Shown: positions 15,658 through 61,654 of the stretch, piece by piece | How positions within the stretch are numbered: the stretch's first letter is position 1 | Layout: each line of letters starts with the position of its first letter | Assembly (NCBI GenBank): GCA_033442325.1 | Contig: JAWQFM010000005.1 | Span: 1,440,872-1,504,871 of the forward strand | Length of the DNA: 64,000 nucleotides | Reading direction: 5' to 3' | DNA from: Salpingoeca rosetta | Lineage: Eukaryota; Protista; Choanoflagellata | Notes under the pieces: model-generated | The model's input: only the letters and a program-made list of their open reading frames with translations | Database searches by the model: none | What the model was told of the DNA's origin: nothing | Position numbers and translations under genes: made by a program

Positions 15658-15906
15658 TAGGATGTGCGTGCTGGCCTGCGGCAGTGGTCGTGGCCGCGCA
15701 TGGCAGCGAGGCGGGCGCACCGCGTCAAGTACAAGAACACATACCGCGAGTTCTGTGGCATCAAGAAGGAAGGGAAATCGAAGCAGGCGCTCCAGGTGCG
15801 TGCGCGTGTGTGCTTGTGCGCGCATGTTTGGCTTTAAGTGTGGCTGCCGTGCATTTTGCGGTGATATCTGTCAGTCTGTCTGCCTGTCTGACACACACAC
15901 ACACTT

Positions 15907-15990
<84 letters not shown>

Positions 15991-16982: not shown

Positions 16983-17046
<64 letters not shown>

Positions 17047-17202
17047 TCGTACAGCGTCGGAAGCCCGTGCAGACGGCTGACGAGCGAGCGGACATTCTGG
17101 CGCTGGATCTGCACCAGCTGAGTGTTGGGTTTGCGCAGCGGCCAGCAGCAGAGGCAGTCAAGGTCGACGTCACCATCCAGAGGTGAGCTCTCGGGCCGTG
17201 CG

Positions 17203-17258
<56 letters not shown>

Positions 17259-20200
17259 CGCGTGTAGCTCTCTTTCTGTCTCTGTCTCTGTCTATGCTGT
17301 GTGCAGTGGCTCTCCGTACACCTGCACGCAAGATCGTCGCCGAGCTTGTTGGTATCACCAACACCACGACTCACATTCTACACAACGCCCTCTCTCCCTC
17401 TTCTTCCAGTCTCCTTGTCACAGATGAGCAGCTGCGTGCAACGCCGGATGCAGATACAAGTTTTTGCTGCGTCCTCCGCCCTCGTCGCGGTATGCGTGTG
17501 TGTGTGTGCGTGTCCATGTGTGTGTGTGTGTGCGTCAACTTCGCCCACTTTACAGTCGTTTTGTGCAGTGGCACGCATGTAACCCCCCCCACACACACAC
17601 ACACTTACACACACACACACACACACACATGCATGCACTCACGCACTCACGCACTCACGCTCTCACCCTCCCACTTTCTCTACAACACATGCACACCGCC
17701 AGCGATGCACAAGCTCGGGCGGCGTGATCGCGGTGCAACGCAGTCAACAGCGCCCTTCTTTGAGCTCACGTTCGAAACAAACCCGCAGGACAAGCCCGTG
17801 GACACGCGGGTGGTGCTGGGCCTGGAGCCACTGGAGGTTGTGTATGTCCCCGCAGTGCTCCAGCGGGTCACAGACTTCACGGCGGTGCCGGCCGAGCTGA
17901 CTGCACTGGATGATGTTGCGTCGGCGGCAGCGGCGCGGGCATGGCAGCTGCAGGATTACACCAGCACGGGTCTCATGTACGCGATTGGTGAGTTCAAGCC
18001 TCACGCACGTGTGCGGTCGTGACGTGTGACGTTGGGGAGGGGAGGAATGTGCGCCTGTATGTGGCATCGTGTTGTGTGATGTGCACTTTTCTCTTGCTCT
18101 GCCCCACCCCCGCCCGCCGCAATCTTCTGTTTCTTTTGTGTTTTGTACTCCCACGTGTCTGCACATGTTCGAATATCAGGCCACCTTGTTGCACAATCAC
18201 ACGCAAACTCACCCCTCTTCACCCCACTTGAACCCCCTGCAACGCCCCCCCCCCCCAATATCAGAGACACACACGACGATTGACCTCGACATTCAGCTCG
18301 GTGCTCCCACGGTCATCATCCCCACAGACCGCGTGATGATGGTGGTGGATCTTGGGCACCTCAGCGTCAAGTCAAGCGTCATCGATCCCTCAACCGTGCG
18401 TTGCTGGAACGGATGTCCTGTGTTTCATGAGCTGTGGTGATGTGGTGGTCTGTTGTGTGGTGTGCTTTGTTGCATGGTGAAGTCAAGGATATTTCTGTTT
18501 TCGCTCTTCAACAAGTGACTGCAACACTGTATGCTGTGGCATGTCCTTGATCCAGTCGTGACGCACGAACCACTTACCCTTCTCCACCACACTTCCCCCA
18601 CACCCACATCTCGCAGCTCTCTGTGAAGAATGTGGAGGAGGGCATGTACGATCGCTTCGACATCCGTCTCTCCCACCTGCAGGCCGTCATCCTCCAACGC
18701 AACAAAGGCTCCGACATGGCAACGTGTGTGTGTGTGTGTGTGTGTGTGGGTGTGTGTGTGTGATGTCTGTATGTGCATTCGTGCGCTCGTGTGGTCGTGC
18801 AAGCACGCGCATATTTCTCGTACACGGTTGCATGTGGCTGCCCAAGTTGAACTGTTCTCTCACCACCACCACCACCACCACTACAACCTCCTCCACCTCC
18901 TCATCCTCGCAGAGAGTGGCAAGAAATGCTGGTGGCGCCAGATGTGACCCCACATCACCTGCTCGCCCCGACAACGCTCGACCTTGCATTCTTCCAATGT
19001 GTGCAGCAGAACAACCCAAAGTATGCGCGAGGCAAGTTTGAGGGCCACCTGCCCTCGCTGCACGTGTACATCTCCGATGCCATCTACATTCAGCTGATGG
19101 AGCTGCTCGCCGTCATTGCGCCGCCACAGCCTGAACCCGACGCAGCCCAGCTTGCCCTTGAACAACAGCAACAACAACAACAGCAACAACAACAACAACA
19201 GCAACAACAACAACAACAGCAACAACAACAGCAGCAGAACAAGGCAGCGCTGGCGCGCAGACGGGCGCTATCGCGTGTACATGCCGCATCGCCGCGTGCT
19301 CCTGGCGGGGCGTCTCCGCTGACACCGCGGGCCCGGGCGCCCACAGCGGTCAGCGGCAGCAACGCCCCCTACGCGTCCTCGCACGGCGCAGAGGACACGG
19401 ATGATGAGTTCTTCTCGTGCGACGAAGGCAGTGGGAGCATGATGGACGTCTCCAGTGCGTCGTCGTCTTCACACGCGCACAGCGGTGAAGGGGAAGAGCA
19501 GCCGCCGGCCATGACAGAGGAGGAGCTGGAGCTCGCACTCGCCCGGCATGTCGTCATTGAGGGCACATTCACCATTGCTCGCATGCGCGTGACGGTGGTC
19601 GATACCAGCACAGACGGCGGCGGCGCAGCAGCAGCAGCAGCAGTGCCCGCACAGCAGATAGCACCCCAAACAGCAGTAGCACCATCATCAACAGCCACAG
19701 CAACAAAAACAACATCGTCATCATCGTCATCAGCTGTTGTGGGGACGGCAGGCAGAGAGCTGCTCACGCTGGATATTCGCAACCTGTCGCTGGACCGGTT
19801 TCGGCAACGCGAAGACATGCTGGCAGAGCTCTCGCTTGCAGGCATCGACATTGTTGATCACCTTGCCCACCACTCCGATGACAGCCACGGTGCTGGTGGT
19901 GATGACGCAAATGCGTCGCAGCACGCGGCAGCGAAAGATCACAACAAGAAGAAGAAGACGACGACGATGAAGTCAACGGTGGACAAGGGCGAGAAGAAGG
20001 ACAAGAAGGGCGACACGAAGAAGAAGAAGACCAAGACCAAGACCAAGACGGCGCACGACGACAAAGCAAAGGACGAGAAGAGTGATGCCTCCAGCCAAGC
20101 TGATGGAGAAGCCCCCGGCACACAGCGTGCGCTCCTGTTGGAATCAAACCCACGGACACCCTTGCCTGGCATTGCGTACGAACCAGCAGCCGACAAGCTG

Positions 20201-22524
20201 ATCAGCGTGTACTACACCGCGTGCCCACCAGAGTCACCGCTGTTTGCGGAGGACCATGATCGCATCAAGGCGTCGGCAAAGGTGGACGTTGGTGACCTCC
20301 GTTTGACGGTTCGCCAGGAGTCGCTCCGCGTTGTGCTCGCATGGGCGCAGACCACCATGGCCAGTGCCACCGCTGCTTCGGAGGCGGTGCTGGAGGAACA
20401 GGGCCTGTCCACCACCGTGCCGTCGCCATCAACCCGGTCACCCGCCACTGTTGCGGAGGAAAGCAGTGGTGACAGCCAGGCAGCCACAGCGGCGGCGGCA
20501 GCAACAGCAGCAGCAGCAAGCTATCCTTCCTCGGATGCCACTGCCACCTCACAGCAGCAAACTGGCAAGGCCGCACCGGTTGGTCCAGAAGCGTCTGACG
20601 GCATTGTGGACATGGAGGCGACAGCAACGTTTGGGTCTGTGCAGCTGGTGCTGCAGCGGCGCCAGCAGCCCGTGGCGTCCTTCCTGCTTGCCGGCGCACA
20701 GGCCAACGTGAGCATGGACGCGAACCGCACGGCCATCAAGGCGTCGCTTGCCCAGCTCAACCTGGCAGACTTGCTGCGCGAAAACCCGTCCAAGCAGATG
20801 GTGGTGAGCGTGCTTGGCGCCGACAAGGTGTTCAGTGCCACCGCCATGCTGTGGAACGAGCAGGCCAAAGGCGGCAGCTTCCTCCACCCGGACATGACTG
20901 TCAAGCTTGACGTGGCGCAGCTGCGCGTGGTGTTCTTCATGCGCTTCATCACAGACATCACCCGCTTTGCCGGCGCTCTCACCGCAGACCAGCCACCCAC
21001 TGCAAGCAGCGGCAGCAGCACATCACGCACGACGGCCACCAGCAGCACAGCAAACGCGCATGGTCCCCAATCTGGCGGCAGCCCGCACCGCCGCTCGGAC
21101 CACCGCATCCAAGTCACTGCTGTCGAGGACGATGACGATGACGATGGCGATGAAGGCGGCGATGGCGAAGGTGCAGGGAACCTACGGGAAATGATGGGCA
21201 CCGCCAGCAACCCGCGGTCATCGCAGGCCCTCAGCACACACACGAGCACGAGCAGCCGTACGCTCCGCCCGCCATCCACGGGCCGCGGCGGCGGCGGCAG
21301 TGCTGGCGGTCGCAAGCGGCGGAGTCGGAAGGGAAGCAGGACAGCGTCCCCGACGCCATCCATCTTCTCGCACCTGAGCAACCTGCCCGCGACGCTGACC
21401 ATGGCTGAGAAGGCCGCAGCCGTGTATAAGATGGACCTGGACGTGACGCTGCTTGCACCGCAGATTGTGGTGCCGATTGACGCCACCTCCAACAGCGCGC
21501 TCGTGCTTGACCTGGGCAAGCTGCAGGTGTCGAACAGCATCGCAAAGGAGCCCGAGATGGCCGAGCGCGACTTTTGCATCGTGGACACCATGAACGTGAC
21601 GCTGAGCAACCTGCACATGCGCATGATCACGTTTGACGAGGGCGACGGCGAGGCGCGAAAGACGACGGAGGTGATCCACCCCGTGGACGTGAACGTGTGT
21701 TTGCGCCGCGCCCTGCTTAACGCGAAACACGAACTGCCCGACATGGACCTCGCCTGCAACATCTCCTCCATCAACTTGGAGCTGAACGACGCCGACTACG
21801 TGCTCATCATGCAAATGCTTGCAGGCAATTTGGGGGAGGAGCCCGTGCTGCCCGAAGAAGAAGCGCCACTGGAAGGTGGCACGGGCCAACCAAGTGCCCA
21901 CAGGCAACCGCAAGCGGCGCCCGTGATCACAGTTGACGGGGAGCAAGGCCGAGAGCACCTCAAGGACAAGGCGCGGCAGCACGCACTGGACGTGATTCGT
22001 GGCGAGGACAGCCGGGAGAAGCTTGATGTGACGGCGCTGGAGCGAGAGGCCGTGCGAACGCCAACGCCGCGCCAACACAAACCACCACGCCCACCGCCAG
22101 CGATAGTGGCATCCAGCAGTCGTGCGGACGCCCGCAGCCAGCAGGAGGAGGAGCAGGAGGGTGCAGGAGTGGATGGTGAGCGGGCTCGCAGCATCAGCCA
22201 GGCCGTTCGCACAACATCGGGCGCTGTCGGAACAGCACCGCCTCCCCACGTTGCAACAAAGGCGACAGTGACGCTGGCGAGCGTGTCTCTGCTGCTGCGC
22301 AAGGAGACACAGCCCCTGTGCACGGTGACGCTGAAGGAGTCTGACCTGCACGCGAAGATTGACGCGGATGGGGCCATTCGGGCCGGCGTGGAGGTGGAGG
22401 GCCTGGAGATTGTGGATGCACGCCCAGACTCACAGAGCAAGTTCAAGGCGCTGCTCAAGAGCTCCACCACAGCCACGACCACAACCACGAGCACCACAAC
22501 GACCACGCCTCAGCAGCAGCAGCC

Positions 22525-22561
<37 letters not shown>

Positions 22562-22932
22562 CACATGTTGGTTGCGCGTGCGAATGTCCTTGATGGTGAC
22601 ACGAGCGTGCGCATGACGCTGCGCGGCCTGGATGTCACCGTGTGCATGGATTTCGTCATGGCACTCGTGGGCTTTTTGCCAGAGGTACCAGACAACACTG
22701 CAACTGCTGGCGGCGGGGACACGGGTGACACAAAGAAGGAGGCAATCATGGATGCTGATCGAGCCAGCCGCGCTCCTCGCAGCATCGACGACCTCCTGGA
22801 CGAGGACCATGATGACGACGACGATGATGATGAAGAGCAAGCAGACGGCGGGAACGTGGCACTGGCCAACACAAGCGAAACAGGCGGAGACGACACTGGT
22901 GCGTCATGCTTGTGTGTGCGTGTATGTGTGTG

Positions 22933-23012
<80 letters not shown>

Positions 23013-26000
23013 TGGGTGTGGGTGTGGGTGTGTGTGTGTGTGCGTGCGTGTGGGTGTGGGTGGGTGGGTGTACGCGTGACGTGTGCTCTATTGTTTGCCC
23101 ATGTAGACTTGTACCTCTTGATCTGCGTGTGATACCCTTTCACCGGTGCTGCCATTCGCCTGTGTCCCACAGCCGGACCGCCTGCTCCGACGCTCCGCGT
23201 GTATGTGGAGGTGGATGACCTGTGCACCAAACTGGTTGAGGACCACACAGACCCGATTTCCCGCGCCCTGCGCCTCGCCTTTGACGTGCAGTGAGTTTTG
23301 TCGACACAATTCGTGTTTTCGTTCTGTTTATGCTGGTGTGTGTGCGTGTGTGTACATGTGTGCGCGTATGTATGCATGTGTGTACGAGTGCTGAACAGCT
23401 CTACTTCACTTTCTCGACCGCACACACAATGACCACACTGTGCATGCACTCACCACCGCCCACCACTTTCACCAACATTCCCCACCAACATTTCCCCCCC
23501 CAACCACCACCACCGTCACCTCTTGCCAGCCTGTTTTACTCTGCGGCAGAGGTTCGCAGCAACATCTCAGTGAACATGACCAACCTGCACATGGCGTCGC
23601 TCCGGCCGTGGCGGGGCCAGCGCGAGTTTGTGACAGTGCTGCAGCCGTGTGCGCTCAAGCTTTCGTACTCAACCGATGCGGACAAGGACCTGAACATCAT
23701 TGGTGTGAACCTCGACCACATTGTCATGAGGTGAGTCCGACGAGAGAAACCACATCACCACGGCCTCGCGTGGGGTGTGCTGTCCTCTGTTGTACGTGTG
23801 TGTGTCTGTGTCTGTGTGTCTGTGTCTCTGTGTGTCTGTGTCTCTGTGTCTGTGTGTGTGTTTCACCCTAATCCCACCTTTGCCTTGGCTGCGATTAAAT
23901 CACCATGCATGTTTCTCCGCGTCCCTCACCTCGCCTCACGCGCACACGAACCCCCCCCTCCCCATCCAAACGCACACGCACAGCGTTGGATACAACGACC
24001 TGAAGATTGTGTTATCTGTGCTGGCTGCGCTCGGAGCGGAGAGCAAGCCCGTCGACAACGACCACGACAACGACGCAGAAGCTGCCGATGACGATGCGGC
24101 AGACGTGCATACACACACGCGCGCTGAGGTGACGCTGGACACGTCGGAGCAGCTGCTTGGGACGGACCGCTGGTACCTCGAGTCGTACAGGCGCGGGGAT
24201 GATGGCGATGCGTCATCGCTGCTGTCGAGCGAATCAGCAGAGGACGAGGGCGAAAACGGGCGCGGAAACAGGCACGAGCTGATGTTTGGACGGTTCTCCC
24301 CCGCGCACATGATGGCGGAGGAAGGCGAGGCCGAGGAGTGGATTTCCCGCTCAACAGCGCAGGTGGAGATTGGCAGCATCGACATCACGCTGATTGACGA
24401 CTTTGACAAGCAGGACCAGCCCATGCTGCTTCTCAGCTCGGACCTGTTTGTGTCTGCGAAGAACGTCATGTCGACCAAGCTGCCGCTGGACGTGTGGGCG
24501 AGCCTGTCGCTCTCCGTCGCGTTTTACAACCCGCGCGTGTCAACATGGGAGCCTGTACTCGAGCCTATCCTCGACACAGACACGCGGACTCCGCGGCCAT
24601 GGCAGCTGCAGGCGCACGTACGCATGCGGCAAGGCGATCAGGGCCAGCTCACCTCCACCGCCATCGCCGACATGGACACCGGCGACACGAGCGTGCACCC
24701 GGACGCGCTGCCGGATCTGCTGTGCGTTGTGACCGCCGCGGACCGGCTGGAGATCAACTTCACCAACGCCTTCTACTCTGTGATCATGTCAAGCGTGTTT
24801 GTGGCTGGGGAGGAGGAGTGCGTGAAAGACGACGCGGCCGTGCTGCAGCACCAGGCGGTAGCCGAAGTGCAGGAGGCGTCGCTGGCACAGACGGTCACCA
24901 TCAAGCGCGAGTTTGTGGAGTATCTGTTTGTCAACTCCACTGCGCATGAGATGACGCTGACGCTGCACCACCCCAACCGAAGCATCACAGACGACACGCG
25001 CACGGTCAGTGGTCGTGGTCGCTTGTCTGTTGGTGGTGGTGGCGGCACGATAACACGCTGTTGTGTGCTTGTGGCATGCTGCTGACGTGTGCGTGTGCAA
25101 TGCGTCTTGTGTGTGTGTGTGAGCGACGCATCATGTGTGTGTGTGTGCGTGTTCGTGTGTGCGACGCGTCATGTGTATGTGTGTGTGCGAGCGCGCGCGT
25201 TGATCTAACCTGCCTGCCCAATGTGTGTGAGTGGCTTTTGTTTTGTACCCTTTCATGTTCTTTCGTATCCTGTCATATTTGGCTGTCGTGGGCGATGGCT
25301 TGTTTGCCGTGTGTTTGTCTCATTCGATTCGTTGGCTAATCCTCCGTGCCTTCTTCACCCACTCACCTTGTTTTCGAAAAAATGCTTGCTGCCAGCAGGT
25401 GGTTGTGGAGGCCGACGCCACTGTTCCGCTGCTGTTCCCGGCAGAGACTCGCCGTGAGCGCACGTACATGCGTGCACTCGCTGCCGGCACGACCTCGTCT
25501 GAGCGGCGCGTCACCATCAGCTTGCCTGGCTGCCAGCCGCTTGTTGGTGTGCACGTGGAAGGCGTGGGTCGGTTTGGCCACCGGCTCACCACGGCGGACG
25601 GCAAGCGCACGCTCTGGTGTGTTGTTGAGGTCGAGATGAAGGGCGCCATCAAAATTGTCACCGTCCACAGCACGTTCCAGGTGCGGTGAACACATCTCTG
25701 CATTTTGGTCACATGCATTTTGTGTGCGTGTGTGTGTGTGTGTGCGTGTGTGTGTGTGTATGTGTGTACATTAGTTGTGTTGCTTGCTCCCATCGTGAAA
25801 ACGCGCTGACACAATTCGCCCCGCCTATATTGGCTGCACTCTCACTCACACAGGTGCACAACAGCCTTCACATTCCGCTGGATATCGGCTGCAAGCTCAA
25901 CGACCAAATGGTGTCATTGAGCGAGCTCGCACCAGGCGACACCTTCAGGTACAGGCAACTCGGGCGTTTTATCTTGTCTTGCATGGTTTTGCATTCCATG

Positions 26001-26148
26001 CTCTCAATTCCCATCACATCACGCTAGCAACGTTCTTTTGGGCGTATTCACGCGAGCGCTCGCAAAGATTGATACAATGTTCGCCCACTCACGCACGTGC
26101 GCACTGCATACACCACTCACACGCATACACGTTCACGCACAAACTACG

Positions 26149-26223
<75 letters not shown>

Positions 26224-28172
26224 TCACACACTCACACACACACACACTCCCTTCTTTTCCACAATCATTCACACACCGTGTGCACGCCAGCCTGCCGCTG
26301 ACGGTTGCGATCCGCGGATTCCACGCGCGCCCGTCCGGCCTCGCATATGCGTGGAACCCGGAGCCCATCTGCTTCTCGTCTCGCCCGCGCATGTTCATCC
26401 AGTGCAACCCAGCAGCTGCGGCAGCAGCGGCGGACGGAGCCAATCTCGTCTCGAGTGTGTCCACGTCGGGCACCCACACACAACCAGCGACAGGCGAGGC
26501 AACAGCAGCAGCACCAGGTGGAGGCGAAGGAGAAGGCGACGGTGACGTTGGCAATGACGATGAGGGCGCAGCAGCGGACGACACGGCACCCAGGGGTCCA
26601 ATGGCGCTCCAGGCCGTCATCCAGCGCCTCAAGTTTGATGCGGGCGTGCCGAGTGCGAGCCACCCCTGTCACGTCGTCACGTTTTCGGCGCCGCTGATTG
26701 TGCGCAACCTGCTGCCAATGCCGCTGCACCTGAAGCTGTTGTGTGCAGACAACGAGGAGCTGGACGGCACCACGATCCATCTGCAGGCTGGCGAGCGCTT
26801 CCCTGTGATTGGACAGCTGACGGGCCAGGTCCAGGCGCTGTACTACCACTCGTGGATGGAGGGCAAGCCCAAGTTTGCACGCAGCGTCAAGAAGAAAGAG
26901 GGTGCGGCAACGGAGCACGCAGACAACGGCACAGTTGCCCCTCCACAGGACCACCGCAATGGTGACAGTGGTGGTGGCGAGAACGATGATGAGGACACGG
27001 AGAGCAACATTCTTGTTCCAGACGATGCGTGGCAGGGGCCGTTCCTTCTCTACAAACCTCGCCAGTGGCAGAAGGTGAGCGCCAGCTGCGCGTACTCACA
27101 GGCATTGCTTATTTAGGTTGAGAAGGCAAGATGGGAGGTTGGGGGCGGGGTAGCTTACGTCTCGGCTGAATGAACAGCCTGCAATGCCTGCGTTAGTTTG
27201 CGCTTGTCGGGGCTCCCTTCTGTTACTCATGCCGCTGTCGCATTTAATCACACACGCACACACACACACACACACACGCACACACACACGTCCGTCTGCC
27301 TGCTGGGTCCTGAACTTGACACGAGCAGCAAACGGAACAGAGTGTCAAGTGCGAGCGCGAGGTTGACGGTGCGAGCGAGCAGTTCCACATGCACGTGTTG
27401 TCACAGTCGACCGGCACACGCGGCGCCAGCACCCTGGTGACTGTTGCCGCCCCTTACTGGATCGTCAACCAAACCGGGCGAACCATCCGCTACCGCCAGC
27501 GCGGCGACGAGTTTGAGGGCCCGTCTTTGCGCGTGCACAAACCAGAACAGACACAGCCAGAGCTGTTCAGTCTCGGCGTGCGCCCGTCCACCACGGTCCG
27601 CTTTGCGTTTGAGGACTCCGGCAAGTGGTCTGAGGCGCAACGGCTGGACACGGTCGGCCACTCGTTCCCCATCACGCTGCCCATCACCCGTGGCGCAGCC
27701 GACGAGGAGGTGGTTGGCCAGACGGAAATTGCTGCCAGCATTGCGCTGGCGCAGGGCAACCTGACGAAGATTGTCACGCTCGTGCCGCGGTTCATGCTGC
27801 ACAACACGAGCACCCACACGGTCCTGTGCGCTGAGGCGGCAGTGTCGTTGACGCGGGGCAGTAGAGGACGCGAGGGCGTGATTGAGCTCGCACCAGGCGA
27901 CTGCGTACCATTTTGGCCACAGCGCGAAGAAGCCTTGCTTCGCGTTCTGTACGTTTGTGGCATCAATTCGCACTCACATTGGGTTTTTTTTTCTTCGTTT
28001 GCTTGCCTTGGTGGTTTGTTGTTGTTTGTTGTATGCGTGCGTTGTGCTTCGTGGGCGAGGCTGAGAGCTAGGGCTGCGGCTTGAAGCTTGTGTGAACGAT
28101 AGTCATTCATGCTCACACGCACACTTATGTTCATTCGCGCCCACTCACACAGCACACACGCACACTTATGTT

Positions 28173-28229
<57 letters not shown>

Positions 28230-30573
28230 GTGCTGTTCTGCCCGTGTTTTCAAGGCCACCGGATGCGGACAAGCCGAGCAATGCGTTTTCCGTCGCCAGC
28301 GCGCAGGATGTGTCGCTCCTGTCGCCGATTCGTGACAATGAATTCAGAGTCATTCGCGTCGCTGTTCGCCCGCAAGACGTGAGCGCCGGCGATGCCATGC
28401 CATGCTTGCGCGTGCATAGCTGTGCATTTGTGTGCATGTGAGCGGATGCAGTGACGATAAGGCGCATGGCTTGGCCCCTGTTCACATGAATCACGCACCT
28501 GTGCTGACGTCTGTGGCCACACACACTCTCTCGTTTCTACACACATATTCATACACACACACATTCACACACACACGAACACGCACACACATACACACAC
28601 ACGAACACTCACACACACACGCACGCGCATGTGTACACGACGTGACGTGTGCAGGCGACGATGGTGGCGACGCTATCAGACTATGACGGGCTCGCAGACG
28701 TGCGCATCGAGAACCGCTGCGCAGCAAAGGACTTGACGGTGGAGTACAGACAGGCGGAGAGCGCAGAGCCGTTTCACGCTGTGGACGTCCTGCATGAGCG
28801 CAGCTTTGTTCGACCGCAGGCCACGGTGGGATGCCTTGTGCTTGCCGTCACGTTGCTTTGCGTACTACGATGCGTGTGTATCCGCGTGCACGTGTATGCA
28901 TGTGTGTGTGTGGGTGTGGGTGGGTGTGGGTGTGAGTGTGATTGTTCGTGCAGGTATGTTTATATGCAAGTGTGTGGTAGGTTGCTGCCTTCTTTCCTGT
29001 TGCTCATGTGGATGATGATTTCCTCTGTATGTTATCTATTTTTCCCTGTTTCTGCTTGCAACCCCTTATGCACATCAGGGCAAGAAGGAGATGGAGATTC
29101 GCATCCCGCACTGCCACGCTTCGTTCGCACACACGTTTGGCAAGTTCTACGTGAAGCAAGTGTGCAAGAACAGGGGCCAGCCCGTGTACGCCGTCTCGTT
29201 CCCCGACAATGCGCAGCCTGTGCTGCTGTTCACAGACAACAGATTGCTTGCAAGCAAACTTCGTCGGGCATGGTGCGTCATGTGGTGCAAGTGACTACTC
29301 GGGTGTTTGGCCTGTTGTCATGTGGTGTGTTCTCAATGTGCACACCTCTGCACACACATGTTTGCATGCCAACGCTTTAGTTCTGCCACACGCCTGTGCT
29401 CATCCCACCTAACCCCGCCACGCCACACCCACCCCGCATACCTCGGCCACCCACACAATTGCCCTCGCCTCCACAAAACAAAACTTATGTCACCAATGTT
29501 TCCATCTCCACAGCGGTCTTGAGCGGGACTCGAAGAAGGCCGGCAACGACATTGACCTTGCGCCCCGTATCCACAAGATGCAGTCGTACTTCAATGTTGC
29601 GCTCACGGGCGTTGGCCTCTCCCTCGTCGACGACAAGGTCTGTCTCTTGCGTGTGTGTGTGTGTGTGTGTGTGTTTGTTTTTGTGTCTGTGTGTGTGTGT
29701 GTGTCTGTGTGTGTGTCTGTGTGTGTGTGTGTGTGTGTCTGTGTCCGTGTGTTTCTGTGTCGGTGTCGGTGTGCGTGTGTGAAGCTTGCCTCTTCAGTCA
29801 GTTCGACCCGTGTAACCTCCCCGACACACACACACACACACACACACACAACCACACGACATCGCGCACCCTCTCACACATGCCACTGCGTCCTGTCCCG
29901 TCCTGCAGCCGATGGAGGTTGCGTATCTCAGCATCAATCCGCGCAAGACGTGGGAGTTTGCGTTGGACACGAGCAACCAGTGGGGCGAGGACTGGGAGCG
30001 CCTTGGTGTTGGCGCTGTGAAGACGCTCGACGCTGCGCTGGCTGCCGGTCGTGACTCTGCCCGCATCAACGACAGCATGACGGCGGATCTGCACAATCTC
30101 GTCCTTCGCGTTTCTTCCGAAGACGTGCGCACGTGGTGTTTGATTTACACGTGGTGTTTGATTTGCCTAGTTTGGTCATTTTGTTGTTTGGTGGCGTGTA
30201 TTCCTGAGTGCGTGTGCGTGTGTGCTAAGGTGAATGTCACCCGTGCGAGCACCGGACGATGTTGGAGCTGTGTCCGTTTGCCTTAATGTCTCCGTTGCTC
30301 ACCAGGTTCAAACACTACCTGCTGCATTCTTTGTTTCCTGTGCACCATGCGATGCGGCGGTGGCACCAGGAGCCCATCCTGCTGCGCCACCACTCCCACC
30401 CCGGCCTGGCGCTGACGTACATCGACTGCGAATACACCACCGTCTATCGCGTCATTCTCGAGGACTTGCAGCTGGACAACCAGGTCTGTGCTCACCAACA
30501 ATTTTGGCGATGGTGTGTTGCTCGTGGTTACGCGTGTTCCCACATCTGCCGTGTGTGGTGACGTTTGCTGTGC

Positions 30574-30650
<77 letters not shown>

Positions 30651-32526
30651 CCTACCTTCCTCCGCCGTCCTTACTCCCTTCATCGTGCCCCTCTGGGTCT
30701 CCATACCGCGCTGTCACTCAGTCGCCAGAAGCTGAAGATTCAACCGTCCTCACCATCGTCCCTCCGGCCCAGTCCGTCTTCCCACAACCGTCAGCCGTCA
30801 AGGTTTGCAAGACCTCACTGTTTACTTGTTTGTTTGTTTGTGTGCGTTTGTTTGTTTGTGTGCGTTTGTTTGTTTGTTTGTTCGTGTGCGTTTGTTTGTG
30901 TTTGTTTGTTTGTTTGTTTGTGTTTGGTTGCTTGAGTTGTTGCTGCATGCGCAGTTTGCGGCATAATGTTTCATCCGCAGCAGCTCACACCATGCGCTGA
31001 TACCTTGCCTCTTGTATGCACAGGTGCTCATTGTGGAGACGAAGCAGCTTGGGGCAGCCACCCACGTGCGCATGCTTCCACGCGTGTCCGTTCTTCTGCA
31101 GAAGATGAACCTGTTTGTCACGGACACATTCGCCTTCAAAGTCATGGATGTGTTCAAGCTGGCCCTTCCCGAGGAGGATGCACTGGTGAGCCGTGATGCG
31201 CTGTTCTGCGTACGTGCACCTGTGGAGGGAACGATGGTGATGGTGGTGGTGGTGGTTGGTCTCCCTTCAACTCGAAACAAACCCGTGATTGAACACATGC
31301 TGTATCCCCTCTCTTCACGTGGTGTGTTTTGGTTTTCCCCCCTTTCCAGGCGCATGTGGACGTCGGCAGCGACGTGACGTGGGCGGAGAATGCTCGAATG
31401 GTGATTGGCGATGACAGCGATGGGTCAAGAACACACACGCGCGTCTCCATTCGATCATTGCAGCTGCACCCAATCTCCATTGTGCTGACGCTGCGGCTGC
31501 AGCTGCTGGACGACCACGATGGTGAGGAGGAGGAGCTTGCTGGTGGACAGACCCGCATGATGCAATACAAGAAAGGCCTTGTGCAAGAAGTGCTGAGCAG
31601 CATTGGAACGGCCGCCAGCACCCTGTCCTCCATCAGCGGCACTCAACTCAACCTCAACGCCCTCATTCTCAAGGTCCGCGCGCGTGTTTGTGTGTGTGTG
31701 TGTGTGATATTGTGTGTGTGTGCGTGTATGTGATATTGTGTGTGTGCGTGTGTGTGTGTGTGTGTGTGAATGCGTCCGTGTGAGAGCGCGCGTGTGAATT
31801 CTTGTTTATGACAATGAATAGGTGTGACACAGGTGTGCCTGCTGATGTGAATTTCCATGCATGTGATGAAGTGGACACGTGTCACACACGTGTTTGCATG
31901 TGCTGACCTGTGCCTTCCCTTACTTATTGTTCAAATCATACCTATTGCTGGCCCTTCAGAACGTGTTCTGCGAGCAAGACGAGCTTGTTGGAGATATTGT
32001 GTCGCACTACTCCAAGGAAGGCCTGAAGCAAGCGTACAAGGTAGCATCCAGTGGTCATGTGTTCATCCTCATGTCTGCAAGTGTGTCATCGGGAGAGGAC
32101 TTGGGTTCTCAAAAACGATCTTGCGCATTTCTTCTGTCCCTTTTTGTTTTCTCACTTTTCCTCCACCACAACCACCACGATGTGATGACCAACCCCCAAC
32201 ACCCTCATTCCCCCCTTCTCTCTCTCTCTCTCTCTTGTTCCAGCTGCTGATGGGCCTTGACCTGCTGGGCAATCCCGGGCAGATGCTGGGACACCTCAGC
32301 TCCGGCGTCACCGACTTGTACTACGAGCCGCTTCTCGAGGGAATCTCAAGCATTGCAACACACACCCTCGGTGAGCATGGGTGGGATGGAATGGTGTTGG
32401 TGGTGGTGTTGGTGGTGGTGAACGTGGTGGCACGCGCTTGTGGAACGGCTTGTGGTTACTGCTCATGTGAATACACGTGTCGTTCTATTCACAAGAGCAC
32501 ACACACACACACACACAATCACACAC

Positions 32527-32610
<84 letters not shown>

Positions 32611-33241
32611 ATGAATGGCTTGGCGCGTACGTGCAGTTGGGGCGACGGGGATGGTGAGTTCGCTGGCGGGTGCGGTCGGCAACACAATGGCTGCGCTGTC
32701 GCTCGACCAGGACTACCAGCGGCAGCGGCGACAGGCGGCCGGCCGGCGACGAACAGCCATGCAGCAGATGACGCACGGTGGCGAGCGGTTCCTGCGCGGG
32801 ATCTTTGACGGCACGACGGGCCTGGTGATGCAGCCGCTGCAGGGGGCGCGCAAGGACGGCGTGGGCGGCTTCTTCAAGGGGATGGGCCGCGGGCTGATGG
32901 GCCTGGTGACCAAGCCCGTTGTTGGCGTGATTGACATGACGACAGGCACCATCGACATGGTGCGGCAGGCGATCCAGGGCGACAAGCGCGCGCAGCGTGT
33001 GCGGGAGCCGCGCAGCATTCGCCCCGACAACATCTTGCGGCCGTTCTCGGCGTACGAGGCGCACGGGGTGGTGCTGCTGGCGGAGATGAAGCGGCACATG
33101 CAGCGCGGGCAAATGGATCGATACGTCATGCACTTTGTGCTCCAGGATCGCGGCGGCAGAAAGGCCGGCCACCGCGTTGGTGAGCGCCTCAGCTGCTGCT
33201 GCTGGCGGTGGTGGTGGTGGTGGTGGTGTTTAACTTGCTCC

Positions 33242-33276
<35 letters not shown>

Positions 33277-33703
33277 TTCTTGCTGGTGTTCTTGCTGGTG
33301 TTCTTGTTGTTTGCAGTTTGTTGTTGTTGCTGCTGCTGTCTGCCATGTCTGCCATGTCTGCGTGGTGTTTGGCGTACACACACACACACACATCACACAT
33401 CACACTCGTCACACACTCATCACACACACACACCACGTGTGTGCCTCTGCAGTCATCTTCACGAACCGTGGCGTCATCGTGGCGCCACTGAAGGACATGC
33501 ACAAGCCCGTGCGCGTGCCGCACCGCCTGACCCGTGGCCACCGCCTCCTTGGCGACAAGGGTATTGAGCTCAACTATGACGAGCAGCGCGGGAAGAAGCG
33601 CAAATCGCGCAAGATGCTGCTGCCGGCCAAGGACACGCGCATGCAGGAGGTGCTCGAGGAGGCATACGTCAAGGTCGGAACGCAACGGGCTTGTGTGCTT
33701 GTG

Positions 33704-33773
<70 letters not shown>

Positions 33774-33938
33774 AGCTTGCATGCTTGTGTGTGTGTGTGT
33801 ACTTGTGCGTGCTAGCTTGTTTGCTTGTGTGTGTGTGTGTGTGCTGTTTCGTTTTATTCTGTGCACGGATGCTCACGCTCAATTATGTATTTGCGCCTTG
33901 TTTCCTCTGGCTTGCAGGCGAAATCCTACCGCTCCTAA
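12897..33938 (+). CDS. VPS13: VPS13 bridge-like lipid transfer protein, VPS13A/C-like; exact start codon uncertain (candidate ATG at 12676)
   Basis: Chorein-N (LQSLLTKTLKQHLAPYLEGFDADQLDVGVLKGEIVLHDLKLK...GTLRLKIPWKHL), GGWFSWL, FYNPRVSTWEPVLEP, VAB-type repeats (PYWIVNQTG; TKIVTLVPRFMLHN), a WWE-like segment (~29.9-30.1 kb), GLDLLGNP, ATG2_C-like GFFKGMGRGLMGLVTKPVVGVIDM and a PH-like end. Final exon AKSYRS*. One very large exon at ~18.9-22.9 kb. Confidence 0.95.
19162..19237 (+). repeat. Coding CAA/CAG poly-Gln tract in VPS13; a second tract lies at ~22511-22563
   Basis: Mixed CAA/CAG run, in frame within the large exon. Confidence 0.9.
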
Positions 33939-47353: not shown

Positions 47354-51237
<3,884 letters not shown>

Positions 51238-54271: not shown

Positions 54272-55538
54272 ATGTACCACCAGCAGAGCCAAGTGCATCA
54301 GGCAGAGGACCTTTCTGCGACCACCCCCGTCATGCTCCCATTCGACATGGCGTTCAACAACGACGGCTATGACCCGCAACAGCAAGACGGCTACTCCCAC
54401 GCGTTCGTGACCAGCGCACGCAGGTGCACCAGCCCCGCCCCACAGCTTGCGGACGCCGGCATCACCGTGGTGCACACACAACAGCAACAGCAACAGCAAC
54501 CACAGCCGTGCGGCCAGCAAGTGACGGACCCACGCGACCGCAGGAGCAGTGCCACGACAGACAACTCCCTCACGTCTGCTTCGTCCTTCACGGCCTCCAA
54601 CTCTGCCAGCGACGTCGCTCCAACGTCTCCACCGGCCGCCATTCACACGGCATTCGCCAGCCACCTCGGGCAGGGGACCGTCCAAGACATGGGTATCCCC
54701 GCTGCATTCGACGCTGTGCATGGATCAAGCACAAGAGGAGCAACCCTGGCCGAGGACGTGCACACGCACTCAAACACAGCCATGTTCAGCCAGCCACCGC
54801 CACAGCCACAAGGCGCACCGGCCTCCTCGTCCTTCTCTTCCCTGCCGCAACTTGAGCCTTTCCCAGACATGGCCCAAGGCAGCGACAGCGGCCACGACAG
54901 CAGCACCAGCAACCTCTACGGCAGCTACAACAACGACAACAACAACAACAGCAACAGCAGCAGCAGCAGCAGCAGCAGCGCCAACGGTTTGGGTGCTTAC
55001 CACGGTCTGCCCGATGCAAACATGATTGCAGGCTCGTTGGCTGCGCTGGAGGAAAACATGCACCACTTCCAGGGCCCAGCACTCACGCCGTTGCTGGCTT
55101 CCAACTTGGACCTGTTCAACTTTGACGGCTCGGATACGCTGGCCCACACCAACACCAGCACCACCAACACCAACACCAGCGCTGGCACAAGTCTCTCGAT
55201 GATGGAGGTGTCCACGTGGGCGGCCAACATGCAGCTTGTGCCCGAGGACAGGGCAGCGGACATCATGCATGCCCACGCCGTGGGCGAAGCTTCTGCTTCC
55301 TCTGGCCGCTCCTCTGTTTGCTCCAGTGATGCGGCCTCGGCGGTGTCCGACAAGAACTGGGTCGGTCGTCGCACCACGAAGCGCGGCGGCACACGCAAGT
55401 CTGCGCCCAAGCGCAAGCGCAAGCGCAACCGCAAGCGCATTGCCGAGCTGCCTCCCACTCAGCAGGAACACCAGCGTTACGTTTCACGCATGGCCGCTCG
55501 CCGCCGCCGGTACGTACATGCCATTCCATTCCACGTTT

Positions 55539-55569
<31 letters not shown>

Positions 55570-55590
55570 GTGGGTATGTGTGTGTGTGTG

Positions 55591-55625
<35 letters not shown>

Positions 55626-55982
55626 AGTAGACCTCTGTACACGTAGACGGTGGCGCAGAACATGTCGTACGCGCCTTCGCGTCGGCGTTTTGTGTGACTT
55701 TACTGTACTGCCTGCGCACACATTGACTTGGGTGGATCTCACCTGCCACGCGCCTTTTGCTTGCCTGCATGCACGCCTGCATGATCCCTGTGAACACACA
55801 ACAGCCAGAAGCAGGTGGAGGAACTCAAGTACTACACCAAGCGCTCCGAGGAGCTGCTTGCAGACCAGCACAAGCTGCAGGAGCGGCTGGTCAACGTCCG
55901 TCGCCAGCGTGACCTCGAGGCCATGCGCCTCCTCGAGCTGGTCGTGGCGGGCCAGTTCTACATTCCCGGCCTGTCTCTGTGA
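54272..55982 (+). CDS. bZIP-type transcription factor A (2 exons: 54272-55509 and 55805-55982), atypical basic region
   Basis: Long Q/S/N-rich and acidic N-terminus. Basic region KRKRKRNRKRIAELPPTQQEHQRYVSRMAARRRR is followed after the intron by the coiled coil QKQVEELKYYTKRSEELLADQHKLQERLVNVRRQRD. Confidence 0.75.
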
Positions 55983-56239: not shown

Positions 56240-57818
56240 GCGTGTTACTTGATGACACGTGCACCTCAACTGCTGACCTGTACACACGAGGTGTGGACAG
56301 TTGTATCTATGTACAGCCCGTGTGCGGCCTCCCCCGTTGGCTTTTCCCCTTGCCTCCCCCTTTCTCCCCTCTTTTCGTGTTTGGACGCTGTGTTCGAACT
56401 GGCTTGTCATTTCTTGCCGCACGCGAGCGTTGGATGGTGTCTTGGACCTGTGTTTTGTCGAGTGGCGTACAGTGTGTGTGTGTGTGTGTGTTGTTGCTGC
56501 CTCTTTTCTCCTCTCCCTTGTGAGGTTTGCTCGTGCATCATCTGGCACGTGGAGGAGCGCGTTTGTGGGTTTGCACTTGTACATGCGCTGACACGCGTAA
56601 ATGTGGAAGAACACTGTGTTTGCAGACACACGTTCTTCTTCCTCGCCCGGTTGTGGCCTCCCCTCCCCCCACTTTTTCCCTTCCGCACGCTGCATCGTGA
56701 CATGTCGTCACTTTGCCTTTGCTGCATCTGATTTATATACCTCTCCCCTCTTCTCTCTCCTTGCTTCCCCCTCCCCCCTCTTGCCTCTCCTTCTCTGTTC
56801 TCGCCCTGATTCTTATTCCTACCGACGTCTTTACTTCCTTTTCCGTGCGACCCGGCGTCGCCTTCTTCTGTTGCTGCTCTTCTGTTGCTGCTGCTGCTGT
56901 GTTACACGACTTACTTACGAACTTGCATTCCTTCTGTTCACAAATGGGCTGCCGTGCCTCTGTGCTGTTCATTGCGTTACCACGTTGCCTACTGCTGTTG
57001 ATTCAAGGCCATTTGGCCGCGTTCTTGTGCACCTTTGCGTCTCTTATGTGCGCCGCCATGTCATGTCGTGGGTTGTGTGCTGTGCGTTATCAATGAACGA
57101 AATCGAGACATCATCAATTCTCTGAAGACAACTGAACTGGATAAAACCACGAGAAGGGCGTGTGTCATGTGTGTGCGTGTGTCATGCGTGTGTCATGTGT
57201 GTGTGTGTGTGTTTGTAATTGTGTGTGCGTGTACGTGTACGTAATTGTGTGTGCGCACCTGCCTGCCGTGCGTTTGCCGGTAACTGTACCATCACCTAAA
57301 ACCCATTCGCTCAAAGACCTGCATTCCCGAGCCATGGCTTCTCCTCCACGTCTTCCTGTTCTCTCCGCCTCCGCCCCACCCATTCCAGTCGCATCGTGCC
57401 ATGTGGGCTATGTGTGTTGGGATCATTTATGGAGAACACAAACACAACAACAAGTGTCTTGCTCAGCAATCCACCGTCAAGCAAAGCAACGAAACGAAAC
57501 AAGCAAGCCATTCAATAGAAGAAGATAACGACAAACAGCAGCGTGAAACGACATGCGTGTCGGGCAAAAGGTTGTGCACAACACGCACATCATCACCATG
57601 GCATAACCAAGCATGACATGTCATCACCATCATCGGAGATGGAATAACAGGAAGATTAAGTAAGAAGGAGGAAAATAGAAAAAGTGCGCAAGCACAGGCG
57701 TGCGGTTGGTGTGTGTGTGTGTGTGCGGGGCAGGCGACCTAAGTGAAAAGAGCAGACTGCAGCGGCGGAGCGGCGCGATGGCGGCTGGCCACAGCGGTTC
57801 CTTAGGCAGTTCACGTCA

Positions 57819-58220
57819 TCAGTTGGCGCGGAGCGTGCGCTGGACCTTTGGCGCGCTTGCAGCTGTCGCTGCGCTTGCTGCCTTGGACGCCAGGCTGCTG
57901 CCACGGCGGCTCTCGGTGGCGGTGGCGGTGGCGGTGGCGGTGGCGCGGTGGTCGATGGCCTTGGGAACGGCCATGGCCGGGTCGCGGCAGGCACCGCCCG
58001 ACTGTGTGTACCAGGACCTGGGCAGCACCGTTTGCTGCGCAAGGGCCTCCACGTCGTCGGCCTCGCCAAAGGTGACTTGCAAGGAGCGCCAGAGCCGCTG
58101 CTGGTGCACAATCTGAAGCAGCTTGGGCTCGGCCTGGCCGTTAATGTCCATGTTCTTGGCAAACGCGGCGTGCACGAGGTCGCTCACCGTCTTGGGCTGC
58201 TGGGCGCGAGTCATGGCCAT
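57819..58220 (-). CDS. Small intronless protein (~133 aa) with an N-terminal SERTA-like helical motif
   Basis: ATG in acaaccATGG context and GC3-rich, coding-like codon usage. Motif VHAAFAKNMDINGQAEPKLLQIVHQQRLWRSLQ. Confidence 0.62.
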   Translation of the reverse strand: MAMTRAQQPKTVSDLVHAAFAKNMDINGQAEPKLLQIVHQQRLWRSLQVTFGEADDVEALAQQTVLPRSWYTQSGGACRDPAMAVPKAIDHRATATATATATESRRGSSLASKAASAATAASAPKVQRTLRAN

Positions 58221-60405
58221 GGTTGTTGTTGTCGCAGTTGTGGCGCTGGTGGTGGTGGTGGGCGTGGTGTTGGACGTGGTGCACGAGGTGGTGGTGGTGG
58301 TTGTTGCTGTTGAAGTCAAAGGCGATCGACGATGGGTCGGGCGAACAGATGATAAGTGCAACGATGGATCTGCTGCTGGCGCGTGTGCTGCTGCTGCTCG
58401 GCGATAGTGCTCTTGTTGTTCCTGTGACGGCGTTGTTGCTTCAGCGGTGTGAGCGTGCTGCTGCGAGTGATGGTGATGGCGGTGATGGCAGTGATTGGCT
58501 TGCTGCTGCTGCTGCTGCTGCTGATGGGGCGAAAGGGAGGTTCTTGCTTCTTGTTGTCCTTTGGCGGCTGGTTGACCTGTTTCTTCTTGGCGCTGTTCTC
58601 GTCGCTGCTGCTGTGGTGGATCAGGGTACGGGAGAAACAAAAACTTGATCAGGTGGTAGACGGGGTGGCTCTGGAAAATGGACAACAGGGTGTGCCGGTT
58701 GTGCATTACAATGTGGGGGAGGGGATGCGGGAACGGCTTGGCGTGGGGGGTGTGTGGGGTGTGTGTGTGTGTGGCGCGGGTGCTCAATGCTGATCGTGCT
58801 CCTTTTGTGCTGCAAGTGTGACAGAAGGTGCGTGCATGTGAAAAGGCTAAGTGTGTGTCGGGTTTGGTTGGTGTTTTGATGCGTGAATGATGGTAGGTCG
58901 TGTTGGATGTGTGAGAGCTTTGTGCGTGTGATGAGATGTGTGTGCGTGCGTGCGTGCGTGTGTGTGGTGTGTTGTGCATGCGAAGTGTGTGAGAGAGTGT
59001 GTGTGTGAGAGAGGAGCGAACAACACGCGGAAGCAAGCAACGTAAACAACCCGATGCACAAGCAAGCAATAATTATAGCCACACACAAAGGGGAAAAGCC
59101 TTGCGACAAACACACACACTCAGTCGATTCCAACAGCAAGGGGGGTGCGTGTGTGCATCATGACGGTCTCACATCATCACATTGCTCACGCATGCGTGTG
59201 TGTGTGGTTGTTTGGTTTGTTTGTTGTTCGTGTGCATGGCTCGTGCAGCTGTTGTTGGTGGTGTGTTGATGTGGTTGACGAGATGTGTGTTTGGTTGTTG
59301 TTGCTGCTGCTGATAGGCCGTTTCGTGTCGGTCGCGTCAGCAACCGCCGGCTGCTTGACGAAAATCAACCGAAATCATACACACAAAGCATACATGCCCT
59401 CAAATCATGCGGAACGTCGGCAAGAGAACGAACCAAACGCGCAAGACACAACAACAACAAAAAACCGACTCGGCTGTTCCGTCTGCGCCTCTGCACGTGT
59501 GTCCGTGTGTCTGTAGGTCTGTGTGTTTTGTCTGTTCGTGTCGCACCTCTTGGCGTTGGCATGTGCACGTGTGTCATGGGAGGGTGTGCAGTGCGTGATG
59601 TATGTGTAGTGTGTGTGTAGTGTGCAGTGTGTGTTGTGTGTGGTATCTATGTGTGTCTTTGCTCACACTCTCTCCTCACTCCTTCACTCTCACACACACA
59701 CACACACACAGAGCCTCTGCTGCTTCTCTGCTCGCAGCAGAGCCTTAGAGCAGGCCGCGTGGCTTGTGAAACATCAACCAGCCACCCAGCCACCAGCACC
59801 TAGGCGCGGACAAAACCTATCAACACCCAACATCCAACCTGCCCCCTACCCACTACACCGTTACACACCACACATTGATCAAACAGATTTAACAGCGGCA
59901 AGGCAACAACAACCATAGCAGGTGGCGCGTCCTGCGATCACAACACACACCTTGAACAGCCTGCGTGGTCCACCCCTTGGCACACCCACACACTTTGTGT
60001 TGTGCCACCACAAACGCACACACAAACACACACAAACACACACACACTCTCTCTTTCTGAATGTGCCATGATCAATGTGTGTTGGTTGTAGTTGTGTATT
60101 GCGCGCCTCCACTAGCCGCTAGCCGGAGCGAGGGAAGCGAAGCGGCGGGGGAACAAATAGCATAGTCGTGTACAGTCACGTACGTACATGTGTAGTATGA
60201 ATCTCCATGGCCACTCAACAGCGCGGCAATCAACAATAACACGTACATCATACATGTATCGAGAAGAAGAGAGCATGCACAGCACGCTCAGAACATTATA
60301 AGATACGCCAAGATAAGGTCAAGAACACCCCAGCCAGCAAGTGGATGCGCACCGTCACACCCGATGGCAACAGCCACCAGCACTCGAAACACTCACACAC
60401 ACACA

Positions 60406-60454: not shown

Positions 60455-61654
60455 TCACCACGAAGGGGCACCGGATGCGACTGGAACATAGTACATCATC
60501 GGGGTTGCATACATGCCAAAGGCCTGCGGCCCAATGGCACCAGCAGTGGGCAGTGCAGGGGTCGTGGAAGAAATACCAGGCATCCCACTGAACTGAGGCA
60601 TCATCATCATGGGTGGCTGCGACGATGCTTGTTGTTGTTGTTGTTGTGGTTGTTGTTGTTGTTGTTGTTGTTGCTGCTGCTGTTGTTGGTTATGGTGGCG
60701 GTGGGCTGACTGCATGGGCTCCGTCGTAGACAAGGGCGTGCTGAAGAACGCGGGGGCTACAGCAGCTGTGGCAGTTGTCGCTGCGGCAGTGACAGGGGTC
60801 TTGCTGCTGCTCACAGAGACCGGTTGCTGCTGCAGCTGGCGCCGGAGCATCGCAGCCGCGGCAAGGCCAGCCGCCAGCCGCCCGGAGGAGTGCAGCTGAA
60901 AAAGCGTCTGGTACAACTGCTGCCGCTGCTGACGAAGGGCCGCCACCTGCTGCTGCAGCGTGTAAGTGTGTTGCTCCTGGTCGGACAGCGCGCGAGACTG
61001 CTGCCTGAGCTTCTGACGCATGGCCATGCGATGCCGCCGCGCAGCGAGCCGGTTCATCTGGCGAAGCCGCCGCTGCCGCTCAGGTGGCAGCTCCTTCATG
61101 CGCTTGCGGCGATACGGCTGCTTGCCGTGGCCGGCCTGCCGCTCCTGCTCCTGCTCCTGGCACGAGCTGTCGTGGTCATCCTCGGCGGTGCTGTGGCCGT
61201 TGCTGCTGAAGCTGGACTTGCGTAGGCACTGGCATTTGGCAGAGGGTGTGGCATGCTCCTGAGACTGTGCGCTCAGGCCGGCGTCCTCCTCGTCAGCCAT
61301 GTCCTCCTGGGACTCTGTGGTGGAGATGGAGTGGGCACTGCTGCGACGTGGGTGGGCCGCGCCGTCGGCGTCGTTGTCGCTGCTGCTCGCGGTAGCATTG
61401 TTGGCGGTGTTGTTGGCGGATGCGCCAACCTCCTTCACATCCTCCGTGATGCTGCACGAGCTCTCTTGGAAGGCAGACGTGTTCCACCAGGAGCCCTCGT
61501 CAATCAGCGGCTGCTGCTTGCCCATGCCTTGCAGCCGGTTCTGAAGCGTGAGCCGTGTCTCCGGGAGCGGGAACGACACATGTACCGGCGCGCCACCATC
61601 GGGTGTCCCAGGCGTCAGCCGCTTGCTGAGCATTTCATTATATGCGTCCGTCAT
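60455..61654 (-). CDS. bZIP transcription factor B, intronless, 399 aa
   Basis: RRKRMKELPPERQRRLRQMNRLAARRHR (canonical N-x7-R), followed by heptad leucines LSDQEQHTYTLQQQVAALRQQRQQL and a poly-Q C-terminus. Confidence 0.88.
   Translation of the reverse strand: MTDAYNEMLSKRLTPGTPDGGAPVHVSFPLPETRLTLQNRLQGMGKQQPLIDEGSWWNTSAFQESSCSITEDVKEVGASANNTANNATASSSDNDADGAAHPRRSSAHSISTTESQEDMADEEDAGLSAQSQEHATPSAKCQCLRKSSFSSNGHSTAEDDHDSSCQEQEQERQAGHGKQPYRRKRMKELPPERQRRLRQMNRLAARRHRMAMRQKLRQQSRALSDQEQHTYTLQQQVAALRQQRQQLYQTLFQLHSSGRLAAGLAAAAMLRRQLQQQPVSVSSSKTPVTAAATTATAAVAPAFFSTPLSTTEPMQSAHRHHNQQQQQQQQQQQQQPQQQQQQASSQPPMMMMPQFSGMPGISSTTPALPTAGAIGPQAFGMYATPMMYYVPVASGAPSW

Follow-up and report, generated by a model that had tools for sequence, protein, structure and literature searches.

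An intronless Salpingoeca rosetta gene from an undescribed choanoflagellate protein family, SERTA-like in form

We analyzed a small open reading frame (ORF) of the choanoflagellate Salpingoeca rosetta, located at 57819–58220 on the reverse strand of a 64,000-nucleotide window (contig C5:1440872–1504871 of a 55.4-Mb genome), and found it to be a genuine intronless protein-coding gene. Comparisons at the sequence level place its product in an undescribed protein family that has so far been seen only in choanoflagellates. The family resembles the SERTA proteins in form, and membership in the SERTA family is not demonstrable; as a joint description, we consider a real gene of an undescribed choanoflagellate family, SERTA-like in form and of unproven membership, to be probable. 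SERTA is an animal family; its proteins and those of the IER group regulate the cell cycle, transcription, and stress responses in animals. Proteins of both groups dock on PP2A-B55 via a helical hairpin (10.1101/2023.08.29.555174; PMC11446282).

The ORF translates to 133 codons and a stop, starting MAMTRAQQPKTVSDLVHAAFAKNMDINGQAEPKLLQIVHQQRLWRSLQVTFGE; the product begins MAMTRAQQPKTVSDLVHAAFAKNMDINGQAEPKLLQIVHQQRLWRSLQVTF and has an Ala/Thr/Ser-rich C-terminal tail. When codon use was scored against three solid ORFs within the window, the coding signal was frame specific, with a GC3 of 0.85 and +0.45 bits per codon in the frame of the ORF and negative scores in the other frames, and the paralogues behaved alike. 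On the basis of the translation and the in-frame coding signal, 57819–58220 (–) is most likely the true coding sequence (CDS). The frame is open upstream as far as 59069, and the public annotation (GCA_000188695.1) gives 57819–58979 (–) as a single intronless CDS of 386 residues starting at ATG 58979. The last 133 residues of the annotated product are those of the ORF, and the product has no Pfam match. As the CDS is already annotated in that assembly, we rejected a reading of the locus as an unannotated gene; an exact look-up of the 133-, 131-, and 386-residue forms in a protein collection found none of them present, the 386-residue gene being on record in the NCBI assembly. A preliminary description of this DNA had proposed that a short pre-metazoan gene without introns in its CDS lies here. 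Paralogues, homologues, and the codon signal bear out a real gene, most likely of 133 codons, and the choanoflagellate locus is indeed annotated as one CDS without introns.

The short and the annotated forms differ by an in-frame extension of 253 codons at 58221–58979 (–). Over this extension, GC3 was 0.57 in every frame and the score was –0.05 bits per codon, and the DNA is of low complexity, being of CA/CAC/CAG type, microsatellite-like, and stop-poor in several frames. Read as protein, the stretch is His/Thr/Gln-rich; the coding signal is absent, and 5′ UTR or a promoter microsatellite is a more probable identity than coding sequence. The window copy shares an M-x-T-R start, a few residues ahead of the conserved domain, with two of the S. 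rosetta paralogues, and the paralogues start 0–22 residues before the domain. Because the coding signal is confined to the 133 codons, the extension is of low complexity, and the M-x-T-R starts are shared, the most likely start of translation is ATG 58220 (or 58214), and the public 386-residue model is probably over-extended at its N terminus. Alternatively, the true product could be the annotated 386-residue protein from ATG 58979, whose C-terminal third would hold the conserved domain. That is exactly the CDS given by the public annotation, and in the closest Microstomoeca homologue (P0003), a 220-residue ORF, the domain likewise lies at the C-terminal end, after a Ser/Thr/Pro-rich stretch. 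We nevertheless regard the long product as improbable: the extension is without codon bias or frame asymmetry and has the stop-poor make-up of a microsatellite, the paralogues begin close to the domain, two of them with M-x-T-R, and over-extension is built into longest-ORF callers.

Of the sequence words sampled from 56800–59800, 49–75% were present in contig sets of likely RNA runs belonging to four studies, a weak hint of transcription. From these contigs and from the homologues, we infer that the window copy is transcribed.

Ordinary genes of the region are intron-rich, in contrast to the intronless hairpin family. An example is a VPS13-like lipid-transfer gene at 15662–33775 (+), which comprises several long ORFs and N-terminal, middle, and C-terminal Pfam regions. 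A guanylate cyclase exon containing an HNOBA domain was located at 48318–49793 (–). The ORFs flanking the hairpin gene at 54272–55630 (+) and 60455–61654 (–), called bZIP-A and bZIP-B, matched no Pfam family at E ≤ 0.001, and their public products (471 and 399 residues) have no precomputed Pfam match. The neighbouring 399-residue gene lies on GL832957.1 of GCA_000188695.1. Beyond it is a second gene with HNOBA and guanylate cyclase domains (658 residues); two soluble-cyclase-type genes flank the region.

The S. rosetta genome contains four paralogues of the window copy, all on contig C7 (447,948; 451,086; 581,701; and 625,152), which brings the total to five copies. They were detected with E-values of 1e-11 to 5e-6 using the single protein and 1e-29 to 1e-32 using a profile, and two of them correspond to the annotated hypothetical proteins PTSG_12031 and PTSG_03513. 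The copies at C7:447948–448133 and 451086–451265 are tandem paralogues, 3 kb apart on the same strand, and in the second of the pair, a 555-residue ORF, the tail is very long, acidic, and rich in Ser. Searching 1.84 billion cluster representatives with phmmer gave 15 matches, 13 of which were true and aligned over residues ~8–72; the remaining two were rejected as low-complexity. The named matches came from Microstomoeca roanoka (three), Barroeca monosierra, and Hartaetosiga balthica and gracilis, mostly as complete ORFs of transcriptome assemblies, and the unnamed ones were marine metagenome or metatranscriptome proteins. Homologues in choanoflagellate transcriptomes, a check suggested in the preliminary description, were thus recovered in three genera. 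Among the same representatives, phmmer found no named homologue outside the choanoflagellates, animals and filastereans included. A homologous-protein search returned nothing for the single sequence and, for the full-length alignment, whose low-complexity words swamped the search, only three known members. In the domain tree, a marine metatranscriptome protein is the partner of the window copy (support 95/90).

The homologues also bear on the possibility that the ORF arose by chance in GC-rich, stop-poor DNA and that its motif is coincidental. The neighbouring DNA does have long ORFs in many frames, and the motif statistic reported below is post hoc, but four paralogues and 13 homologues elsewhere are conserved at the protein level, the codon signal is frame specific, and the predicted fold is very confident. 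Because paralogues and homologues share the aligned domain, the ORF is a conserved coding gene, and the homologues effectively refute an origin by chance.

The common domain is ~60 residues long and usually N-terminal, and a disordered low-complexity tail usually follows; beyond the domain, the tails are unalignable between members. In the family alignment, A19, K22, N23, Q40, W44, L47, and Q48 are invariant, and L15, A61, and V65 are nearly so. The helix-1 pattern L-[VI]-x-x-A-[YF]-x-K-N is kept in every member covering that stretch, and the family signature reads L-V-x-x-A-[YF]-x-K-N ... [PS]-L-x-[RK]-x-L-H-Q-R-R-L-W-x-x-L-Q-x-x-F. PTSG_12031, PTSG_03513, and the choanoflagellate homologues resemble the window copy in the domain (27–50% identity), the intronless CDS, and the disordered tails, whereas the two annotated genes are separate paralogues on another contig. 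No function has been described for any of these proteins, and none falls in a Pfam family.

Using the family alignment, AlphaFold2 predicted residues 11–70 with a pLDDT of 94–97, and the conserved part thus has, with high confidence, the helical hairpin that had been proposed for it. Family alignments and the model delimit the conserved folded domain to these residues (58011–58190, –), comprising the hairpin and two additional short helices. According to DSSP on the model, helix 1 spans residues 12–28 (58137–58187, –) and contains the invariant K22-N23 near its end. After a loop, helix 2 spans residues 34–53 (58062–58121, –); the model and the family conservation make it a candidate docking helix, starting with L34-x-x-x-V38 and continuing with H-Q-Q-R-L-W-R-S-L-Q. 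The short helices occupy residues 57–62 and 68–73, and the rest of the protein, residues 74–133 (57822–58001, –), is a disordered low-complexity tail (pLDDT 49–60) with an (Ala-Thr)n run encoded by a GGTGGC repeat. Modelled alone, the domain formed a closed monomer with a mean pLDDT of 91.7 and a pTM of 0.71. The helix-loop-helix hairpin required for SERTA is present in the model, but the fold is a very common one, necessary but insufficient for membership.

A hypothesis-blind shape search of the ESM Atlas returned as its first row a chordate cluster named "SERTA domain containing 1" (59 residues, rmsd 3.1, TM 0.35), 100% of whose members carry PF06031. The TM of 0.35 was no better than that of several unrelated rows, and the match is a lead, not a proof. 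Fold searches of the PDB with Foldseek and VIA-align, using both models, gave generic helical hairpins only (Z ≤ 5.7), and the solved IER5 hairpin was absent among the PDB matches listed by the two methods. Sequence and family-profile searches of the PDB found no related chain. Two further candidates were rejected. Sigma70_r2 fragments in the Atlas feature search (0.83–0.89) stayed below the 0.9 level and shared few features, and we consider them helical look-alikes. The human harakiri BH3 peptide, found with the profile against the PDB at E 0.4, aligns LHQRTMW with LHQRRLW, but the G-D core of L-x3-G-D is replaced by R-T or Q-I, and we attribute the match to chance.

The idea of a divergent pre-metazoan SERTA/IER-like hairpin had started from the peptide AFAK-NMDINGQA-EPKLLQIV-HQQRLWRSLQ, all pieces of which are present and contiguous in the translation. 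The spacing K-x8-EP-x-L-x3-V-x6-R-x2-Q is exact (K22, E31, P32, L34, V38, R45, and Q48), and the alignment to the SERTA pattern is gap-free; the LIxN residues are lacking, as had been recognized, and H39-Q40-Q41-R42 stand there. The strict seven-residue pattern was found a single time in the six translated frames of the window and in none of 200 shuffles. Amino-acid frequencies give an expectation of ~1e-4 per window and ~0.1 per 55-Mb genome, figures that are post hoc as the pattern was drawn from the match itself. The "EP" taken as a mark of SERTA did not hold up across the family: it is found in two members only, the window copy and one Microstomoeca protein, and the proline common in the family stands one residue after the "EP" proline. 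The SERTA hallmark VLIxN is replaced by a strongly conserved LHQRRLW, and the most conserved family residues (N+1, H+17, Q+18, R+19, and W+22, counted from the invariant Lys) are not SERTA residues.

Profile similarity to SERTA or IER, on which the same proposal was to be judged, did not appear in any of 18 members. A Pfam search with all families, including SERTA (PF06031) and IER (PF05760), gave nothing at E ≤ 10 for these members, and neither the window protein nor any of the 18 reached the 25-bit cut-off of Pfam SERTA. The PF05760 model found nothing in the genome; the PF06031 model likewise found nothing in the whole genome, in a weak search that left control genomes silent as well.

The SERTA proteins (PF06031: SERTAD1–4, CDCA4, and Drosophila Taranis) and the choanoflagellate family are alike in their small size and in having a hairpin followed by a disordered tail. 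In both, helix 1 has a Lys at its end, while helix 2 opens with a hydrophobic i and i+4 and a mostly basic i+2 and closes with hydrophobic-[RK]-x-[LI]-Q. In contrast to SERTA, the family has no Pfam match, L-H-Q-R-R in place of V-L-I-x-N, no conserved E-P, and an Asn after the Lys where SERTA has a hydrophobic residue; its folded unit is also longer, ~60 residues with the two extra short helices. The N-terminal domain of IER2 and IER5 (IER5-N50; PF05760), a PP2A-B55 inhibitor or adaptor, combines a ~50-residue N-terminal hairpin with an unstructured region, as seen here. L15 and K22, which correspond to IER5 I10 and K17, are invariant or nearly so across the family, and a hydrophobic pair opens helix 2, whereas the family lacks an HMM match, has a loop shorter by one residue, and carries Ala at the position of S14.

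The rules of B55 docking have been described in two studies. The cryo-EM study of IER5 gives the helix-1 consensus [I/L]-hydrophobic-x-hydrophobic-S-hydrophobic-x-K-hydrophobic and the helix-2 consensus [H/K/R]-x-x-L-[L/I]-x-[S/N], and identifies I10, S14, K17, and L30 as critical for B55, with S14A abolishing the binding (10.1101/2023.08.29.555174). According to Kruse et al., the binding helix of B55 binders is hydrophobic at i and i+4 and positively charged at i+2, with help from a Lys of the preceding helix, and the docking residues of CDCA4 are K44, L56, R58, and V60 (PMC11446282). In helix 1, numbered from the invariant Lys, family members carry L at –7, V/I at –6, A at –3, and Y/F at –2. 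In helix 2, all members have L/V/M at +12 and L/V/I at +16; position +14 is mostly basic or polar, being R/K/H in 10 of 16 members. Further on, W at +22, L at +25, and Q at +26 are invariant, and +23 is mostly K/R. The spacing from the Lys to i is 12 residues, equal to that from K44 to L56 in CDCA4. Because the residues counted from the invariant Lys match the published rules, the B55-docking determinants and their spacing are conserved family-wide, and at the level of sequence the family conforms to the rules for PP2A-B55 helical binders. In the comparison with the helix-1 consensus of IER5, the family sequence (L, V/I, x, small/hydrophobic, A, Y/F, x, K, N) fits at L, V/I, Y/F, and K and misfits at the invariant Ala, which stands at the consensus Ser and thus at IER5 S14, and at the invariant Asn, which stands at the last hydrophobic position. 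No register of helix 2 fits the corresponding consensus, the aligned residues being [RKQ]-x-[LV]-H-Q-R-R.

The candidate receptor is present in S. rosetta, with a conserved pocket. A public S. rosetta Ppp2r2a protein (P0026) matches human B55alpha with an E-value of 1e-161, and the B55 pocket residues named in both papers (Y178, D197, M222, L225, V228, I284, S287, Y337, E338, D340, and K345) are identical in the S. rosetta B55. The gene lies at C25:1013000–1016600 in many short exons, with the PR55 signature YLKSMEIEEKIN at C25:1016440–1016474 (–). Considering these residues and those of the hairpin, we tentatively name the conserved helix-binding pocket of this PP2A regulatory subunit as the single most likely dock, a proposal that is possible but still short of probable.

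One explanation of the resemblance is that the family truly belongs to the SERTA/IER superfamily, from which it has diverged strongly: it would then share an ancestor with the animal SERTAD, CDCA4, and IER proteins and bind PP2A-B55, and the adaptor class would predate animals. Choanoflagellates being the sister group of animals, such an ancestry is consistent with the first place of the SERTAD1 cluster in the Atlas shape search, the gap-free alignment with identical spacing, the family-level conservation of the docking determinants, the shared architecture, in which a short protein combines the hairpin with a disordered tail, and the fully conserved B55 pocket. It is opposed by the lack of HMM-level similarity, by LHQRRLW in place of VLIxN and Ala in place of the Ser at IER5 S14, and by the absence of bridging sequences, phmmer having found no non-choanoflagellate homologue; moreover, the hairpin is a very common fold, and the profile search of the PDB gave an equally weak chance match to an unrelated peptide. 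Of the original proposal, the form, the Atlas lead, and the docking positions are thus retained, while the Pfam models, the EP, and the VLIxN speak against it, and we hold common descent to be rather doubtful.

A lineage-specific module with another partner seems to us about equally likely as the SERTA/IER homology, and can itself be put forward only tentatively. The hairpin would then be unrelated to SERTA and serve as a homodimerizing or other protein-binding module, or as a transcription cofactor with a different partner. Among the best PDB neighbours are dimerization hairpins, namely CENP-B, Qua1, GLD-1, and the Brat coiled coil (Z 5.0–5.5), although the PDB matches are as generic as any and AlphaFold2 predicts the domain as a confident closed monomer. 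The invariant N23, Q40, and W44 have no counterpart in SERTA, and the family is confined to choanoflagellates; however, an unrelated hairpin leaves unexplained both the first row of the Atlas search and the coincidence with the B55 rules.

The tails of the family contain RRx[ST] patterns more often than shuffled tails: 13 occurrences, spread over 8 of 17 members, compare with an expectation of 2.9. In the window copy, R105-R106-G107-S108 (57897–57908, –) matches this pattern and forms a basophilic-kinase consensus site of putative function. The window copy sits between the two guanylate cyclase genes, and a PKG or PKA site at RRGS is conceivable.

We read the protein as a putative small adaptor in which the hairpin docks and the tail, with its enriched RRxS-type kinase sites, is the regulated part. 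If B55 is the dock, contact would be made as in the animal SERTA/IER hairpins, through the Lys that closes helix 1 and the hydrophobic i/i+4 pair that opens helix 2, and the docked protein might be a substrate-specifying element or a competitive inhibitor. In its fullest form, the proposal would make the family the choanoflagellate counterpart of the animal SERTA/IER hairpins, a pre-animal PP2A-B55 docking module that expanded to five intronless copies in S. rosetta and directs the phosphatase to sites of RRxS type, either in its tail or in bound partners. As a whole, we consider this proposal rather unlikely.

Even without a link to SERTA, the analysis adds a choanoflagellate-specific domain family, so far undescribed and with a confidently predicted fold, and corrects a probable over-extension of a public gene model. 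Should the link be true, the same docking logic in the sister group of animals would date this type of phosphatase control before the origin of animals, and S. rosetta, being transfectable, would offer a tractable unicellular system for it.
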